This document shows, piece by piece, positions 33,852 to 39,659 of a stretch of 64,000 nt of DNA. The notes beneath the pieces are model-generated. The model saw only the letters and a program-made list of their open reading frames with translations, did no database searches and was not told the origin of the DNA. Both the position numbers and the translations under genes were made by a program. The stretch lies in the sequence record MN794232.1. One strand, given 5' to 3'. Position 1 is the stretch's first letter. Each line of letters begins with the position of its first letter.

Positions 33852-34127
33852 ATGAACATCAATCTGCTTATTCGCAATGAAGTGAAGAACAACACGAGTC
33901 GTTATGCTACGGCATACGACATCATGAACGACATGCTTGAGAAGTTCCCTCAAGCGCGTGCCTCTGCTGCGAAAAACGATGGAACAATGAAGAACAGCAC
34001 ACTGCGACGTGAAATCGCTCGTGCTCTTGATAACTCAAGCAACTGGAAAGCAATCGGCAAGACCGAGACTGGTCGTAAACTATACGAACGCTTACCTAAT
34101 GGCAATTCACTAGAGAACTTTGTATGA
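33852..34127 (+). CDS. Hypothetical protein
   Basis: 91 aa; GAGG RBS. Confidence 0.7.
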   Translation: MNINLLIRNEVKNNTSRYATAYDIMNDMLEKFPQARASAAKNDGTMKNSTLRREIARALDNSSNWKAIGKTETGRKLYERLPNGNSLENFV

Positions 34128-34750
34128 ACGCATATGACTTAGTAAGAAAAATGCAAAAGGTTGTTAACTCTTGCGAGACAATTGAACAACTACGTAATGC
34201 AAGAAAGTATCTCATGCGCTGTCAAGACTATGCACTAGATGGTGGCAATGACAATTACATCACTACTATCATGGTAGAAGTTGATGACTTAGATGAACGC
34301 ATTACCAATAAGATCGTTGAGTTGTCTGATACTCGTGGGATGATGGCTATCGAAACTGGCATTATCAAAGTCGGCATTGATATTCATGGCGTAATTGATC
34401 AATCACCAGAGTTCTTCGCGCTGTTAAGCAAACTACCAGTTGAAGTGCATATCATCACTGGCATTAAAGAAGAACTCGACACTGATGTACCAGATGACTT
34501 AGAGTACGATCACTGGTTCTCGATCCATCAAGAGTGTGAAGACCGCGGCGTTGAAATCAAATACGACGAGAAAGGTCGCCCATGGGTCGATGATGAAATC
34601 TGGAACAACATGAAAGCTGAATACTGTCAAGAGAACAACATCAATATCATGATTGATGACTCACCAACGTATGCTAAAACATTCGAAGGTCTTGATACTT
34701 TCTATCTACAACTAACCAATACTGTTCGTGATGAATGGAGACGCAAATGA
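34124..34750 (+). CDS. HAD-like protein with N-terminal extension
   Basis: VGIDIHGVID, IITG, K...C, IMIDDSP. Confidence 0.6.
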   Translation: MNAYDLVRKMQKVVNSCETIEQLRNARKYLMRCQDYALDGGNDNYITTIMVEVDDLDERITNKIVELSDTRGMMAIETGIIKVGIDIHGVIDQSPEFFALLSKLPVEVHIITGIKEELDTDVPDDLEYDHWFSIHQECEDRGVEIKYDEKGRPWVDDEIWNNMKAEYCQENNINIMIDDSPTYAKTFEGLDTFYLQLTNTVRDEWRRK

Positions 34751-34932
34751 AATCATTCGGCATTATAGACCGTGAAGGCAGACATCTACTTGAACTCGAT
34801 GTTGACAATGAACTAAAAGTCATGGCAATCTTCTCTGAAATTGAAGATGCTCATCGTGTGCTGTACAAATTTGGCTTTGATAAGCAAGGCTTTCGCGTAA
34901 TCGAACTTAAACCACTTGAGAAGAAAGTATGA
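34747..34932 (+). CDS. Hypothetical protein
   Basis: ATGA overlap. Confidence 0.6.
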   Translation: MKSFGIIDREGRHLLELDVDNELKVMAIFSEIEDAHRVLYKFGFDKQGFRVIELKPLEKKV

Positions 34933-35138
34933 ACGTAGCACATGTAATGTCACAACACGCATCAATCCAATATGCGCTGATTGAATATCTCAATGCAGAA
35001 TACGACGGCGAAGGTCATATCGAATATGCTGAATACTTCGAAGACATTCAAGCGTGGGAAGTTCAATACTATGATGGTGAATTCCTACACGAGCTAACCG
35101 TTACTGCACAAGCAATTGAGCAATGGATGAACAAATGA
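34929..35138 (+). CDS. Small acidic protein (paralogue set A)
   Basis: VMSQHASIQYALIEYL. Confidence 0.7.
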   Translation: MNVAHVMSQHASIQYALIEYLNAEYDGEGHIEYAEYFEDIQAWEVQYYDGEFLHELTVTAQAIEQWMNK

Positions 35139-35341
35139 TTGACCAAACAATGTCAGACTACAGTCGCATCATGAATGCAATCGAAGAATATTTGGACTTA
35201 CGTTCTTATCAATACACTGATGTCATTCAATATGATAAAGAACGTAAAGGCTTTGATGTCGCGATTGTTGAAGAAACTGAAAACGGATCCGAATACCTAG
35301 ATGTATTCGTGCCAAACGAAAGGCTAGAAACATTCCTATGA
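35135..35341 (+). CDS. Small acidic protein (paralogue set A)
   Basis: TMSDYSRIMNAIEEYL. Confidence 0.7.
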   Translation: MIDQTMSDYSRIMNAIEEYLDLRSYQYTDVIQYDKERKGFDVAIVEETENGSEYLDVFVPNERLETFL

Positions 35342-35571
35342 ATATAAACGATGTAATGATCTCGCACGAGCAAATCATGAAGTCATTGCATCGTGTCATA
35401 GAAAGTCGCACTGATAATCGCGTTGTCGAAATCACTTACGATAAAGACAAACTGTATTTCATTGTGACTCTAAGCTCATCCGATGCCGTTGCTGATGAAA
35501 TCTATCAATGGAACATGAAAGTCACCAACGAAACAATAGACAATCAAATGCACATGGAGAAGTTCAGATGA
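35338..35571 (+). CDS. Small protein (paralogue set A)
   Basis: VMISHEQIMKSLHRVI. Confidence 0.7.
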   Translation: MNINDVMISHEQIMKSLHRVIESRTDNRVVEITYDKDKLYFIVTLSSSDAVADEIYQWNMKVTNETIDNQMHMEKFR

Positions 35572-35741
35572 AACTACCAGAATACTTGAGCCACGTTACT
35601 GTAAAAGAAAACGTAATCACTATCGACTCAGCGCGAGATAAAGCATTGGTCGTCGATTATCTAACATCAATCAAAGCACGCTTCCATATTGTCCAAACAA
35701 CTGTTAGCCGCTGCGAAATCCACGTGAAGAGAACATCATGA
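35568..35741 (+). CDS. Hypothetical protein
   Basis: ATGA overlaps at both ends. Confidence 0.6.
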   Translation: MKLPEYLSHVTVKENVITIDSARDKALVVDYLTSIKARFHIVQTTVSRCEIHVKRTS

Positions 35742-36067
35742 AAGAACTACTGAACACACTATCTAAAACTGAAATCGAAATCGCTAAACAGTTCGGTCTC
35801 GACCATCTATGGCACGGACTAGTAGACTGTACTAATAGCGTATTCGCTGCCGATAACGAAGATCTACTAAAAGCACGTGACTTCCAATACGCTGATACAG
35901 AGAAAGCAATCACAGAAGGCGACTGTTATGGCATTGAAGTATACGGCACGAGCGTATGGCTATCAACTGATGGCAAATACGTATTGACTGTAGCTGATGA
36001 CGGCTGTGGCAATCGAGACTTCTATATCTTCGATGCGTCTAAGCACTCAGATTGCGAAATGTACTAA
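35738..36067 (+). CDS. Hypothetical protein
   Basis: 109 aa. Confidence 0.7.
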   Translation: MKELLNTLSKTEIEIAKQFGLDHLWHGLVDCTNSVFAADNEDLLKARDFQYADTEKAITEGDCYGIEVYGTSVWLSTDGKYVLTVADDGCGNRDFYIFDASKHSDCEMY

Positions 36068-36076
36068 AAACAAATA

Positions 36077-36148
36077 AAAAGGGTTGACAGATGTCAGCCC
36101 TTTTCTGTATTATACAACTACTGAAACGAAACAAGGAAAATCATTATG
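36077..36148 (+). promoter_or_regulatory. Early promoter stem-loop cassette
   Basis: AAAAGGGTTGAC...GTCAGCCCTTTT hairpin holding TTGACA; TATTAT; GAAACGAAACAAGGA leader. Confidence 0.75.
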
Positions 36149-36337
36149 ACTACAGTAATTCTATTAGGCGCAGTAATGTTCATCATTCTATTACTCGTGC
36201 TCGTAAACGAAATGCGCCCGTTCATGTCAGAAGAAAACAAAACTATGATGCTGACGTTCGCCGTAGCTATCAGCTTAATCAATCTGTCCTTTATCGTGAA
36301 GTACGCAAGCTTCTTCCAATTACTACTGGAGAAATAA
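36146..36337 (+). CDS. Small membrane protein
   Basis: Two hydrophobic helices. Confidence 0.65.
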   Translation: MTTVILLGAVMFIILLLVLVNEMRPFMSEENKTMMLTFAVAISLINLSFIVKYASFFQLLLEK

Positions 36338-36340
36338 ATC

Positions 36341-36496
36341 ATGACACTAACCGCTATGCTATTGACATTACTATGCTGTGCAATACTAACTGGCATTAGT
36401 ATCTTCAGCTTCATCAACAAACCCGGATTCTTTAGCTTACTGTTCGCATTAGTATTCGGCACTGTCTCTTATGTTATGCTAATGGCTATCGTATGA
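36341..36496 (+). CDS. Small membrane protein (51 aa)
   Basis: GGAG RBS; two hydrophobic helices. Confidence 0.6.
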   Translation: MTLTAMLLTLLCCAILTGISIFSFINKPGFFSLLFALVFGTVSYVMLMAIV

Positions 36497-36828
36497 GCGC
36501 AATACTATTAATGAAAATCGGTATATCTCTAATGATATTCGGCATTGCGCTACTCGTGCTCGGCAATATCACTATATGGTATCTTAAACGTAGAGAGAAA
36601 ACTATGACACAAACAACTCAATCAATCCGCGCTGTCTGTATCGACAATCAATCAAATCGTATAGACAAGCCAGAACCACCTACTGGCTTAACAGAAGGCA
36701 AAGAGTATGTCGTTCACATGTATAACGTAAACGAACATATCAACAAACCACCTATGATTCGTATCACTAACGATCTAGGTCAACGCGCAAGCTATGTCGC
36801 TTCTCGATTCAATCTAATAGTAGGATAA
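36493..36828 (+). CDS. Membrane-anchored protein (an internal start at about 36604 is possible)
   Basis: N-terminal TM; C-part VCIDN...GLTEGKEY.V. Confidence 0.6.
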   Translation: MSAILLMKIGISLMIFGIALLVLGNITIWYLKRREKTMTQTTQSIRAVCIDNQSNRIDKPEPPTGLTEGKEYVVHMYNVNEHINKPPMIRITNDLGQRASYVASRFNLIVG

Positions 36829-36831
36829 AAC

Positions 36832-36999
36832 ATGTTCGCACTATCACTCTTAATGCTTATTCTCGTTGTATATCTGTTTGTAACCGATAAAACAAAACGC
36901 ACAGTTCCTTTCATGATACTGCTAACAGCAACTGCGTTTAACTCTATCATACAGTATTACCTCATGGATATTCTCTCATTGAGCGTTAGTCTATCGTAA
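36832..36999 (+). CDS. Small membrane protein (55 aa)
   Basis: AGGA RBS; two hydrophobic helices. Confidence 0.55.
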   Translation: MFALSLLMLILVVYLFVTDKTKRTVPFMILLTATAFNSIIQYYLMDILSLSVSLS

Positions 37000-37396
37000 T
37001 AGCTTCTATCAGATAGTAGCTCAAAACCGCTTAGAATGCGATTCAGAGCGTGTCAGAGCATAGTGCAGATACAACTGTTTTTAATATATCGTACCATGCC
37101 TCGTTAAAATCATCTTGGTAAGGAAAACCGTGTAAAAAGCCAGTTGGTCAGATACGGTAAGTTACTGAAAAAACTTCGGAAATACACGTTTTTAAGCGGT
37201 TGAAAGACTATGCTGCAACACGTGTGTAATATAGTGAAAAAATCGGTGAACCCTCATCGGCTCCTGTGTAGTAAAATGCAGTTGCGGATGGTACTCGCCT
37301 TATGAAAATCTTAATCGCTTCGCATCTTTCCGATTGACAGCCAATGCCATCCTGTGAGAGAATGAGAAGAGATTTGAACCGCCGACGGAGGTAATT
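37000..37396. other. Gene-free gap at a G/C skew inversion; candidate replication origin
   Basis: Largest non-coding stretch in the window; C>G to the left and G>C to the right with the same coding strand; 9-bp inverted pair at 37025 and 37193. Confidence 0.5.
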
Positions 37397-37543
37397 GTGA
37401 TTACATTGGCGTTATTTTATATGAGTCGCGACATGCAATACAGTGAGCGACCAAGTGACTTGTATCTCGGTACATGTATTTTAGACTTTGCATTAATCAT
37501 TACGTTGTTCTGTGGTGTAATGATGTTCACGGGGAATTGGTAA
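37397..37543 (+). CDS. Small membrane protein (48 aa, GTG start)
   Basis: GGAGG RBS; TTGACA at 37334 upstream. Confidence 0.55.
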   Translation: MITLALFYMSRDMQYSERPSDLYLGTCILDFALIITLFCGVMMFTGNW

Positions 37544-37851
37544 TGAGACGATTTAAACTTGGTAATCTCTTACGTGGTGGCTTTGCTGGTGAGTTTGAGA
37601 CGATAGAAGAAGCATGGGAGCAGCTTGGTTCACGCTTTCTACTGTCATTTCCGTGTGATGCATGGTCAAAAGAGCGTGGTGTTTACATCAATGAAGACGG
37701 TGGTCGCCATGTTTACATGTATGTAAAAGAAGAGAACAAGTATGGTCAGCTTGATTGGGCTCTGTGTAAAGGTGATGTGTTTTATATGAAAGACCGTGTG
37801 CCGGTTACTGCTGACGATTATGAATACTGTCGTGATGCTGAATTTTTCTAA
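37543..37851 (+). CDS. Hypothetical protein
   Basis: TAATG coupling; starts MRRFKLG. Confidence 0.7.
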   Translation: MRRFKLGNLLRGGFAGEFETIEEAWEQLGSRFLLSFPCDAWSKERGVYINEDGGRHVYMYVKEENKYGQLDWALCKGDVFYMKDRVPVTADDYEYCRDAEFF

Positions 37852-37860
37852 GGGTTAAAG

Positions 37861-38466
37861 ATGAAAAGAGTTGAGTTACACAAGAAAGTGGTAGACAAGC
37901 AAGCTGTTCTGCCAGATCATTCCCATGTACAAGTTGAGACGTATTACCACACGTACAAGGGTTACATGAATTATCTAACTGGTTTGCGTGGTGTAGAAGG
38001 TGATCAGTATCTACTTGTTACAGATGATGGTCGTTTTGTTCGAGTAGAAGAGAAACATCTAAACGGTCAAGAGCAGAAACAGCGCAAGATCAGTGGTGGT
38101 TTAATTGATGTACGAGCGCGACTGGGGTTGAGTGGTAAAGATCCAGATTGGTATGACTGTATCTGGCGTAATGGTAAGATTGTTTACAAGTACCGCGAGA
38201 CAGATTTCGTTACTGAAGAACATGAGCTAGTGGTTGGTGAGATAGTAGACATTTATGAGTCTAACGACTTTAATGGTGATTATCCGCATGATGCTACAGT
38301 GGTGTTATCTCGACCGAAGCAGATGGTGCTTGAAGCGTATGGTAAACTAGTAGTGTTTACAGTGCCGAAAGAGCCATGTGGTGATAGTTTAGTCTCTGAC
38401 TGTGGTGATTATCGTATTGCTGGTAATTACGCCGCGAGTGAATACGACGAAGAACTGCATTCGTAG
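37861..38466 (+). CDS. Hypothetical protein
   Basis: 201 aa. Confidence 0.75.
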   Translation: MKRVELHKKVVDKQAVLPDHSHVQVETYYHTYKGYMNYLTGLRGVEGDQYLLVTDDGRFVRVEEKHLNGQEQKQRKISGGLIDVRARLGLSGKDPDWYDCIWRNGKIVYKYRETDFVTEEHELVVGEIVDIYESNDFNGDYPHDATVVLSRPKQMVLEAYGKLVVFTVPKEPCGDSLVSDCGDYRIAGNYAASEYDEELHS

Positions 38467-38469
38467 TAG

Positions 38470-38505
38470 AAAGGGTTGACGCTTGTCAGCCCTTTTTTGT
38501 ATCAT
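38470..38505 (+). promoter_or_regulatory. Early promoter stem-loop cassette
   Basis: AAAGGGTTGAC-gctt-GTCAGCCCTTT with TTGACG and TATCAT. Confidence 0.75.
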
Positions 38506-38525
38506 ACGGGTTTTAGGAGAAGATT

Positions 38526-39569
38526 ATGGCTAGAATTAAATGGACACTTGAGTTAATAAAAGAAGACGCTTTAAAGTACAAGACTCGTGGTGAATGGCAG
38601 AAGAAGTCCATTAGTGGTTATACTGCTGCTCGACGACGTGATGTGATTGATGAGTGTTGTGCTCATATGACAGATGTAAAGAAGCCGAGTGGTTATTGGA
38701 CAATCGAACGTCTTAAAGAAGATGCATTGAAATACAAGACTCGCAGTGAATGGTTCGAGAAATCTAGTGGTTATTTGACTGCTCGTTCGCGTGGATTGAT
38801 TGATGAGTGTTGTGCTCATATGACAGAACATACAAAGCCGAATGGTTATTGGACAATCGAACGTCTTAAAGAAGATGCATTGAAATACAAGACTCGTAGT
38901 GAATGGGCCAAGAAATCTAGTGGCGCTTATGATGCTGCCCTACGTCATGATATGCTTGATGACTGTTGTGGTCATATGAAGACAGATGTCAAGAATTTAT
39001 CAAAGCGTTGCATATACCGTATCTATTCTGGTAATGAGATTTACATTGGGTTGACGTATAACGCGGATAGACGATTCGACGAGCATCGTAAGGGGACGCC
39101 ACAGATTGTAGATTTAATAGAGCGAGTTGGTATTGAGAATGTGATTTTCGAGCGATTGACTGACTACATAGAACCAGTACTTGCTCAGATTGCAGAGAAA
39201 GAACACATCGAGCACTATGAAAGTGAAGGTTGGGTTATTTTGAATCGTGCCAAGGGTGGTAGTCTTGGTGGTGATAGATTGCATTGGACAACTGAACGTA
39301 TTAAAGAAGATGCGTTGAAGTACAAGACTCGTAATGAATGGAAGAATAAATCTAGTGGTTATGGTGCTGCCGGAAGACGTGGTATAATTGATGAATGTTG
39401 TTCTCATATGCCCGCAAAGTATAAATGGACACTTGAGTTAATAAAAGAAGACGCTTTAAAGTACAATACTCACAATGAATGGCAGAAGAACTCTGGTGGT
39501 TATGATGCTGCTCGAAGACGTGGTATACTTGATGAGTGTTGTGCTCATATGCCAAAACGAGCCAAGTGA
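38526..39569 (+). CDS. GIY-YIG endonuclease flanked by five ~47-51-aa repeats
   Basis: Central CIYRI...IYIGLT...RRFDEH; WT.E..KEDALKY.T..EW...DECC.HM three times before and twice after. Confidence 0.82.
   Translation: MARIKWTLELIKEDALKYKTRGEWQKKSISGYTAARRRDVIDECCAHMTDVKKPSGYWTIERLKEDALKYKTRSEWFEKSSGYLTARSRGLIDECCAHMTEHTKPNGYWTIERLKEDALKYKTRSEWAKKSSGAYDAALRHDMLDDCCGHMKTDVKNLSKRCIYRIYSGNEIYIGLTYNADRRFDEHRKGTPQIVDLIERVGIENVIFERLTDYIEPVLAQIAEKEHIEHYESEGWVILNRAKGGSLGGDRLHWTTERIKEDALKYKTRNEWKNKSSGYGAAGRRGIIDECCSHMPAKYKWTLELIKEDALKYNTHNEWQKNSGGYDAARRRGILDECCAHMPKRAK
38691..38896 (+). repeat. 53-bp identical direct repeats 153 bp apart inside the endonuclease gene
   Basis: 38691-38743 equals 38844-38896; also 45 bp at 38537-38581 equals 39422-39466. 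Confidence 0.85.
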
Positions 39570-39582
39570 AAATAATTGAAGA

Positions 39583-39659
39583 AAGTGGTTGCACGGGGTA
39601 GCCACTTACTGTATTATCTCTATATCGAAACGACATCGACTAACAGAGAGAACATTATG
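39583..39659 (+). promoter_or_regulatory. Early promoter cassette
   Basis: TTGCAC-17 bp-TATTAT inside an AAGTGGTT/AGCCACTT hairpin; 35 nt identical to 40377-40411. Confidence 0.78.

Follow-up and report, generated by a model that had tools for sequence, protein, structure and literature searches.

The replication origins of phage T4 offer the closest described systems to compare with a candidate origin in its relatives among the vibriophages. In T4, oriF and oriG need MotA, and KVP40-type phages encode asiA without a recognisable motA (PMC2988021). The design of oriF and oriG does not transfer directly to KVP40-type phages, because these have no recognisable motA. The origin oriE consists of an early promoter and evenly spaced repeats, and no single T4 origin is indispensable (PMC3016281). 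When the skew of two relatives was analysed in a published study, the "origins" came out elsewhere than at the locus described below, in agreement with the direction of transcription (PMC5107563). Our literature search returned no account of an origin or of DnaA boxes for KVP40-type phages. With no origin mapped in these phages in the searchable literature, the locus could tell whether T4-like vibriophages start replication here.

We analysed a stretch of 64,000 nt (the window, to which all positions refer unless a record position is given) that matches positions 62,001-126,000 of the record of Vibrio phage VH1_2019 (MN794232.1) at 100%. VH1_2019, VH1 for short, is a T4-like Schizotequatrovirus of the KVP40 species with a genome of 246,059 bp. 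A preliminary description of this DNA had proposed an origin firing in both directions at a sharp inversion of the G/C skew, in a gap without genes at 37000-37396. The gap lies in a long plus-strand block of early-type genes that runs from the NMN adenylyltransferase gene to tk. It measures 397 bp, holds no ORF of at least 40 aa in any frame and is probably, as proposed, the longest gene-free gap of the window. Skew was analysed on the full record by comparing adjacent windows. The gap itself was compared in an alignment of 11 genomes and in nt-1, whose sequence was fetched via its homologue of g2, one of the four genes (g0 to g3) that follow the gap. Public runs were examined as Logan assembled contigs, and none of the runs holding the locus was an RNA run.

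The base counts that had drawn attention to the gap are exact (17 C and 7 G at 36601-36660, 22 G and 7 C at 37561-37620), and the flanking genes on both sides are indeed on the plus strand. When adjacent windows of 1-2 kb were compared along all 246,059 bp, no positive skew step in the genome exceeded the one at record positions 99,120-99,360, i.e. at 37,120-37,360. The step amounts to +0.38 to +0.40, and the runner-up is about half of this (0.18-0.22 at windows of at least 1 kb). The most G-skewed 2-kb window of the genome starts at 37,401 (skew of 0.30, about 4 SD). This G-skewed island stops abruptly around 39,600, at the second-largest negative skew step in the genome. The cumulative G-C curve has a local minimum at 37,028 (flat between 36,963 and 37,129) with a depth of 70, which is regained by 37,822, within 800 bp. 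This dip ties for the deepest in the 160-kb block of plus-strand genes, the other one lying over a minus-strand gene. At the scale of the genome, the cumulative skew tracks gene strand: it climbs steadily over 160 kb of plus-strand genes, falls where genes turn to the minus strand, and has its maximum at record position 227,732. The minimum that had been expected near 37.2 kb is present as a local inflection, but the genome-scale minimum lies at record position 23. The skew at the gap fades within 2-3 kb, and we found no replication-scale switch of strand composition there, only the local dip of 70 counts. The skew switch is a local and gene-bounded signal, not a replication-scale one. This calls for caution: even where a phage genome has its sharpest skew switch, the signal can be local and bound to genes, without any replication meaning.

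We then asked what distinguishes the two arms of the step. The left arm (33852-36999, plus strand) consists of small early-type genes in which, at synonymous sites, C exceeds G and A exceeds T. Between 33852 and 36067 the four-fold GC skew is the lowest of the genome (-0.325, z around -3.7; the next lowest is -0.116). The four-fold composition of this block is A.38, C.20, G.08 and T.34, to be compared with A.29, C.13, G.18 and T.40 genome-wide. At the level of single genes of the left arm, third-position GC skew ranges from -0.32 to -0.51 in five genes and is milder in the others. On the other side, g1, g2 and g3 have the 2nd, 3rd and 5th highest GC skew among 383 ORFs, with a G excess at codon positions 2 and 3 and not at position 1, and the four-fold composition of the right arm is A.24, C.07, G.15 and T.54. 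The third-position skew of g2 lies between +0.30 and +0.39 in all clades, with four-fold sites 52-66% identical to those of VH1. Hence, the flip is visible at synonymous (four-fold) sites in both arms, and its polarity is the one that an origin would produce. Eight of ten genomes show it, VH1 counted, despite varying gene content on the left-hand side; VS1 and nt-1 have no negative left arm. Some relatives have one more gene next to the gap, and there the negative block lies further outward.

We considered whether the right arm is coded like highly expressed genes, since its four-fold composition (T.54, C.07) matches that of the stretch holding the major head protein. We dropped this reading because the codon-adaptation scores of g1-g3 lie only between the 24th and 55th percentiles. 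Genome-wide, third-position skew is correlated with codon adaptation (rho of -0.32), and codon-adaptation scores single out neither arm cleanly. As a separate observation, 33852-36067 shows the strongest C-over-G four-fold usage of the genome (G at 8-10%), yet its codon-adaptation scores are average to high. To look at recent changes, we polarised substitutions by their frequency in eight KVP40-species genomes. The left arm revealed no strand asymmetry (34 C>T and 34 G>A, with per-base rates of 0.045 and 0.048), and the counts in the right arm (5 and 4) are too small to judge asymmetry. Genes of the right arm are rich in Gly, Arg, Trp and Cys and use G- and T-ending codons, while those of the left arm use C- and A-ending codons. 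We infer that the step results from abutting gene blocks with different codon and amino-acid habits, and not from a replication-fork footprint. That the arms meet exactly at a conserved element still speaks for a local process.

BLAST found this element in each of the 28 related records, where it is mostly unannotated; its identity in other species is about 70%. The conserved motifs of the gap occur nowhere else in the genome, and the gap is a single-copy non-coding element with genus-wide conservation. Following a variable tail after the stop codon of the upstream gene (37000-37022), a left conserved module (37023-37110) contains a TCAGAGC direct pair, a short AT-rich tract and a ATCGCACCATGCCTCG core. 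It is unique within the genome, recognisable in nt-1, and 75-84% identical between VH1 and the other species, to be compared with only 52-66% at the four-fold sites of the neighbouring g2. Next comes a centre of 123 bp (37111-37233), to which we return below. The right module (37234-37396) includes the promoter and a GGAGG ribosome-binding site. Its pre-promoter part (37234-37333, plus strand) is made of an A-tract, an invariant 17-mer found once in the genome (CTCATCGGCTCCTGTGT, 37253-37269) and an A/T-rich stretch before the -35, and the module has invariant columns in the 11-genome alignment. Such conservation, well above that of synonymous sites, indicates that these segments are probably selected as DNA or as predicted protein-binding sequence. 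A structured RNA was sought as well. An Rfam scan of 36500-38000 returned nothing near threshold, and RNAalifold gave the left module a consensus fold of -3.4 kcal/mol with zero compensatory pairs and no covariation. Scans of viral and metagenome data with the gap motifs retrieved just KVP40 and VH7D themselves or chance matches. One feature highlighted by the preliminary description, the inverted pair AACCGCTTA/TAAGCGGTT, is present at the places given (9 nt each, 37025-37033 and 37193-37201) but is not conserved. We take it for a chance occurrence because its right arm is altered (37196, 37198) in seven of the eight KVP40-species genomes; by our own arithmetic, about 0.3 such pairs are expected in 400 bp.

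The promoter is the best defined component of the gap. The TTGACA reported at 37334 is there, as part of a sigma-70-type early promoter that is invariant across the genus (37334-37363, plus strand). It combines TTGACA, an 18-nt spacer and a TG-extended GAGAAT, so that 10 of the 12 hexamer positions agree with the consensus in addition to the TG. Across the 11 aligned genomes, neither the hexamers nor the extended -10 vary, save for one base of the -10 in phi-ST2, and the promoter of nt-1 is near-identical. From these elements, host RNA polymerase would be predicted to start around 37,370, and the transcript would cover g0 and then g1-g3. The gene g0 (37397-37543, plus strand), unannotated in MN794232.1, encodes a hydrophobic protein of 48 aa from a GTG start that lies 4 nt past GGAGG; in the VS/QD01 clade an ATG takes the same place. 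Its product matches phrog_16778 (E-value of 8e-33) and is 81-100% identical genus-wide, nt-1 included, with zero variable sites in the eight KVP40-species genomes. It is followed by g1 (102 aa) and g2 (201 aa), two genus-restricted genes with extreme skew of G over C (37543-38466, plus strand). Homologues of g2 were restricted to Schizotequatrovirus and nt-1 in a homologue search. Pfam and PHROGs gave no function for g0-g2, and the structure of g2 provided no lead (pLDDT of 42 for the AlphaFold model, best ESM Atlas score of 0.78). A scan of nine neighbouring ORFs matched no family of known function and revealed no candidate for an initiator like RepEA or RepEB.

The surroundings of the gap carry another type of promoter. 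Arbiol, Comeau and Krisch reportedly described in 2010 promoter-early stem-loop (PeSL) cassettes in the hyperplastic regions of T4-type phages. We found a PeSL-like cassette at 36076-36115 (plus strand), with TTGACA in the stem followed by TATTAT, from a family with copies at no fewer than seven other sites of the genome. Another lies between g2 and g3 (38467-38507, plus strand), and a PeSL-like stem-loop with a promoter closes the G-skewed island (39567-39659, plus strand). Logan contigs branch at these repeats. The gene g3 (38526-39569, plus strand) translates into a GIY-YIG-like core flanked by repeats, five in all and about 50 aa long, which end in Cys-Cys-x-His-Met. The Pfam match to GIY-YIG is weak (E-value of 0.0015), and the repeats are also present in the DNA. 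Flanked by PeSL repeats, g3 is present or absent depending on the strain: KVP40 lacks it, and the contigs of two public runs skip it exactly, joining 38497 to 39610. The gene looks like a mobile cassette.

The centre of the gap is where the species differ. The other genomes, VH7D, phi-Grn1, Va3, XZ1, phi-ST2, VS1, VS2, QD01, R11Z and nt-1, each carry seven DnaA boxes (at most one mismatch) at this place. The boxes are all on the same strand and phased, with spacings of 12, 23, 21, 23, 12 and 9 that are kept from nt-1 to VH7D. In VH7D, the array accounts for 7 of just 25 such 9-mers in 247 kb. In VH1, by contrast, a scan of 401 nt (37000-37400) found no 9-mer within two mismatches of TGTGGATAA, when 1.1 are expected per 400 bp. 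The gap of VH1 consequently has no cluster of TTATCCACA-type 9-mers of the kind that marks an oriC-like origin. The gaps of KVP40, phi-pp2 and PVA8 have no DnaA box within one mismatch either. In the whole VH1 genome, we counted 8 scattered TGTGNATAA in 246 kb, without any cluster, and 9 occurrences of the reversed-pattern control. Identity between the KVP40-type centre and the boxed centres is 41-45%, compared with 78-81% among the boxed centres, but the length of the centre is kept (123 nt and 120-121 nt in the boxed genomes). No motif is repeated beyond chance between 37100 and 37245 (P of 0.35-0.8), whereas the centre of VH7D has 8-9 copies (P < 0.005). We had considered an initiator swap, i.e. 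replacement iterons in the KVP40-type centre, and rejected it in view of this lack of repeats. The centre is not unusually variable within the species (0.14 variable sites per nt, compared with 0.10-0.11 in neighbouring genes).

These comparisons show that the ancestral DnaA array was lost in the KVP40 species, the centre having either been replaced or diverged past recognition, so that a non-repetitive sequence now fills the same length. Recruitment of DnaA would thus be lost in VH1, because its centre has no boxes, while the promoter and both modules are kept. This box-less allele of a conserved element is the new point of our analysis. The alleles do not sort by host, as both the box-less VH1 and the boxed QD01 come from isolation on V. 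natriegens. The same element with seven boxes (QD01, nt-1) and without any (VH1_2019) provides a ready-made comparison of what DnaA contributes. Viral contigs often contain pairs of DnaA boxes 3 nt apart. A scan of bacterial genomes for such a pair with a third box 12-16 nt further on gave at least 120 loci, and the one match that we checked, in the dnaA-dnaN spacer of Thermus arciformis, has the same tandem phasing. Besides the main array, the VS/QD01 clade, and no other, has a second tandem pair of consensus boxes with the same 3-nt distance, some 5 kb further downstream (record positions 102,409-102,429 in QD01 and 198,879-198,899 in VS1).

Other origin hallmarks were scarce in the gap. Its least stable 30-100 bp (37060-37090) reach the 95th-99th percentile of the window and fall outside the 12 least stable places of the window; by eye, the duplex just downstream of the promoter is not exceptionally unstable. 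There is no GATC in the gap (3.0 per kb in the genome), and the IHF consensus WATCAANNNNTTR is absent from the gaps of VH1, VH7D and nt-1. We also considered whether the G skew of the island would make an R-loop. In a nearest-neighbour estimate, the stability of the RNA-DNA relative to the DNA-DNA duplex in the island gave percentiles of 8-81 depending on window size (z of -0.1 to -1.1). We rejected the idea on the strength of this estimate, in which the favourability of the island is ordinary. Overall, the VH1 gap lacks DnaA boxes, iterons, GATC and IHF sites, has no stretch that stands out as an unwinding element, and keeps the promoter as its sole clear origin hallmark.

How should the gap be interpreted? 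We give about an even chance to the reading that it is a control region with an early promoter, placed where two gene blocks of unlike codon usage meet. The gap would then be the KVP40-species form of a genus-wide single-copy control region, whose demonstrable content is a strong early promoter. Upstream of this promoter are two conserved modules, predicted to bind protein, at a fixed distance of 120-123 bp, and the skew step would arise where gene blocks with opposite compositional habits abut at the promoter. This implies that the step does not come from replication forks, and against it stands the recurrence of the flip in eight of the ten genomes, which is unlikely to be pure coincidence of juxtaposition. 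A plain promoter also fits poorly with the fact that the most negative four-fold block and three of the five most G-skewed genes flank the same element. The ancestral phased DnaA array, together with the precedent of oriE, may point to more than a plain promoter. The origin proposed by the preliminary description survives in part: the locus is special (a conserved single-copy element, a strong promoter, relatives with boxes), but the skew is local, the inverted pair is not conserved, the left arm has no substitution asymmetry and hallmarks are missing. We regard as a tentative alternative an origin of the T4 kind, in which the early-promoter transcript would prime the rightward leading strand, with a delayed leftward fork, and which in the KVP40 species would work without DnaA. 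On this less likely reading, the opening or regulation of the origin in the sister species would be assisted by a filament of DnaA on the seven boxes. The local four-fold flip would record deamination of whichever strand stays single-stranded on either side. These proposals draw on a single-copy conserved element with an invariant promoter, on the conserved spacing of the orthologous DnaA array (with the same phasing in the T. arciformis dnaA-dnaN spacer), and on a flip of origin polarity that is the most extreme of the genome and is found in eight of ten genomes. They also find a parallel in oriE, with its early promoter and even repeats, and in the individual dispensability of T4 origins (PMC3016281). 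They have to contend with a skew that is gone within 2-3 kb without genome-scale inflection, with symmetric recent substitutions, and with nt-1 and VS1, which are boxed yet have no negative left arm. Moreover, the gap of VH1 shows neither boxes nor iterons, neither GATC nor IHF sites and no clear unwinding element, the estimated favourability of the hybrid is ordinary (z of -0.1 to -1.1), and KVP40 has no recognisable MotA, which oriF and oriG need in T4 (PMC2988021). It is rather unlikely that the gap is a working origin that survived the loss of its DnaA array, which would make the KVP40 species a natural DnaA-independent mutant. If this were true, T4-like vibriophages would ancestrally have coupled a promoter-primed origin to a filament of host DnaA. 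The kilobase-scale four-fold flip would then be the deamination footprint of a strand-displacement-type initiation on either side.

Two further readings account for part of the observations. The ancestral element might have bound host DnaA, either as a sponge against host initiation or to control the promoter, and this role might have been lost in the KVP40 species, leaving a spacer. The seven boxes of high-affinity type per copy in all other species agree with this, as do the absence of a cluster in VH1 and the non-repetitive KVP40-type centre. Yet the length of the centre is kept and its variability within the species is near that of its neighbours, which argues against free decay, and both alleles are found in phages isolated on one host, V. 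natriegens (VH1 and QD01). We consider this reading improbable. The other concerns the assemblies themselves. Record ends or contig breaks of five or six assemblies fall within 37056-37323, spread over 270 bp, when by our own arithmetic about 0.03 would be expected by chance for some 20 assemblies. PVA8 and PVA23, assembled with SOAPdenovo defaults and without any described reorientation, have record ends around 37,293, and R10Z and R11Z end around 37,322. The partial record TCU_VP02_YC ends at 37,056, the alignment of V05 stops at 37,220, and in run X5 the Logan contigs break off at 37,119 and resume at 37,167. We found no genome-internal repeat in the gap to account for such breaks. Two contigs of run X1 differ twofold in depth, a difference to which we attach no meaning. 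PVA8 also has a T, 17 nt from its record start, where all 11 genomes of the alignment have a G; this may be an end-of-contig error. Independent assemblies breaking inside the gap, as seen in records and contigs only, could indicate a physical peculiarity of the virion DNA, such as a pac-like packaging start, a nick or a poorly sequenced stretch. We find this very improbable: the contigs of three other runs cross the gap unbroken, the break points span 270 bp, and the terminase genes, placed by synteny with T4, are about 120 kb away. T4-type phages package by headful and have no known pac site.

The cassettes that flank the gap resemble the PeSL of T4-type hyperplastic regions, in that dispersed repeats with a promoter in a hairpin (here at 36076, 38467 and 39567) enclose small genes as well as g3, which not every strain has. 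The gap differs from them by being ten times longer, single-copy and without a hairpin around the -35. Bacterial oriC regions and other clusters of DnaA boxes share with the sister phages the tandem consensus boxes 3 nt apart and a third box 12-16 nt further on. VH1_2019 departs from them by having no box at two mismatches, no clustering of GATC, no IHF site and no genome-scale skew switch. The gap has in common with oriF and oriG, the R-loop model on which the preliminary description drew, a promoter (37334-37363) whose transcript could prime leading-strand synthesis and which would read into the proposed origin. In T4, however, this is a MotA-dependent middle promoter accompanied by a downstream AT-rich unwinding element, whereas the VH1 promoter is early-type and no segment near it is exceptionally unstable. 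The hexamers, their spacing, their conservation and the translatable gene that follows are those of a host-sigma early promoter region. The locus and oriE both belong to T4-type phages and share a host-sigma early promoter, to which the sister species add an adjacent, evenly spaced cluster of same-strand repeats in a syntenic non-coding stretch. The repeats of the relatives are host DnaA boxes and not phage-specific 12-mers, and VH1_2019 has none at all, its centre (37100-37245) showing no oriE-type repeat cluster next to the early promoter. VH1 matches oriE in the promoter alone, and among the systems compared here oriE is the closest precedent for this locus.
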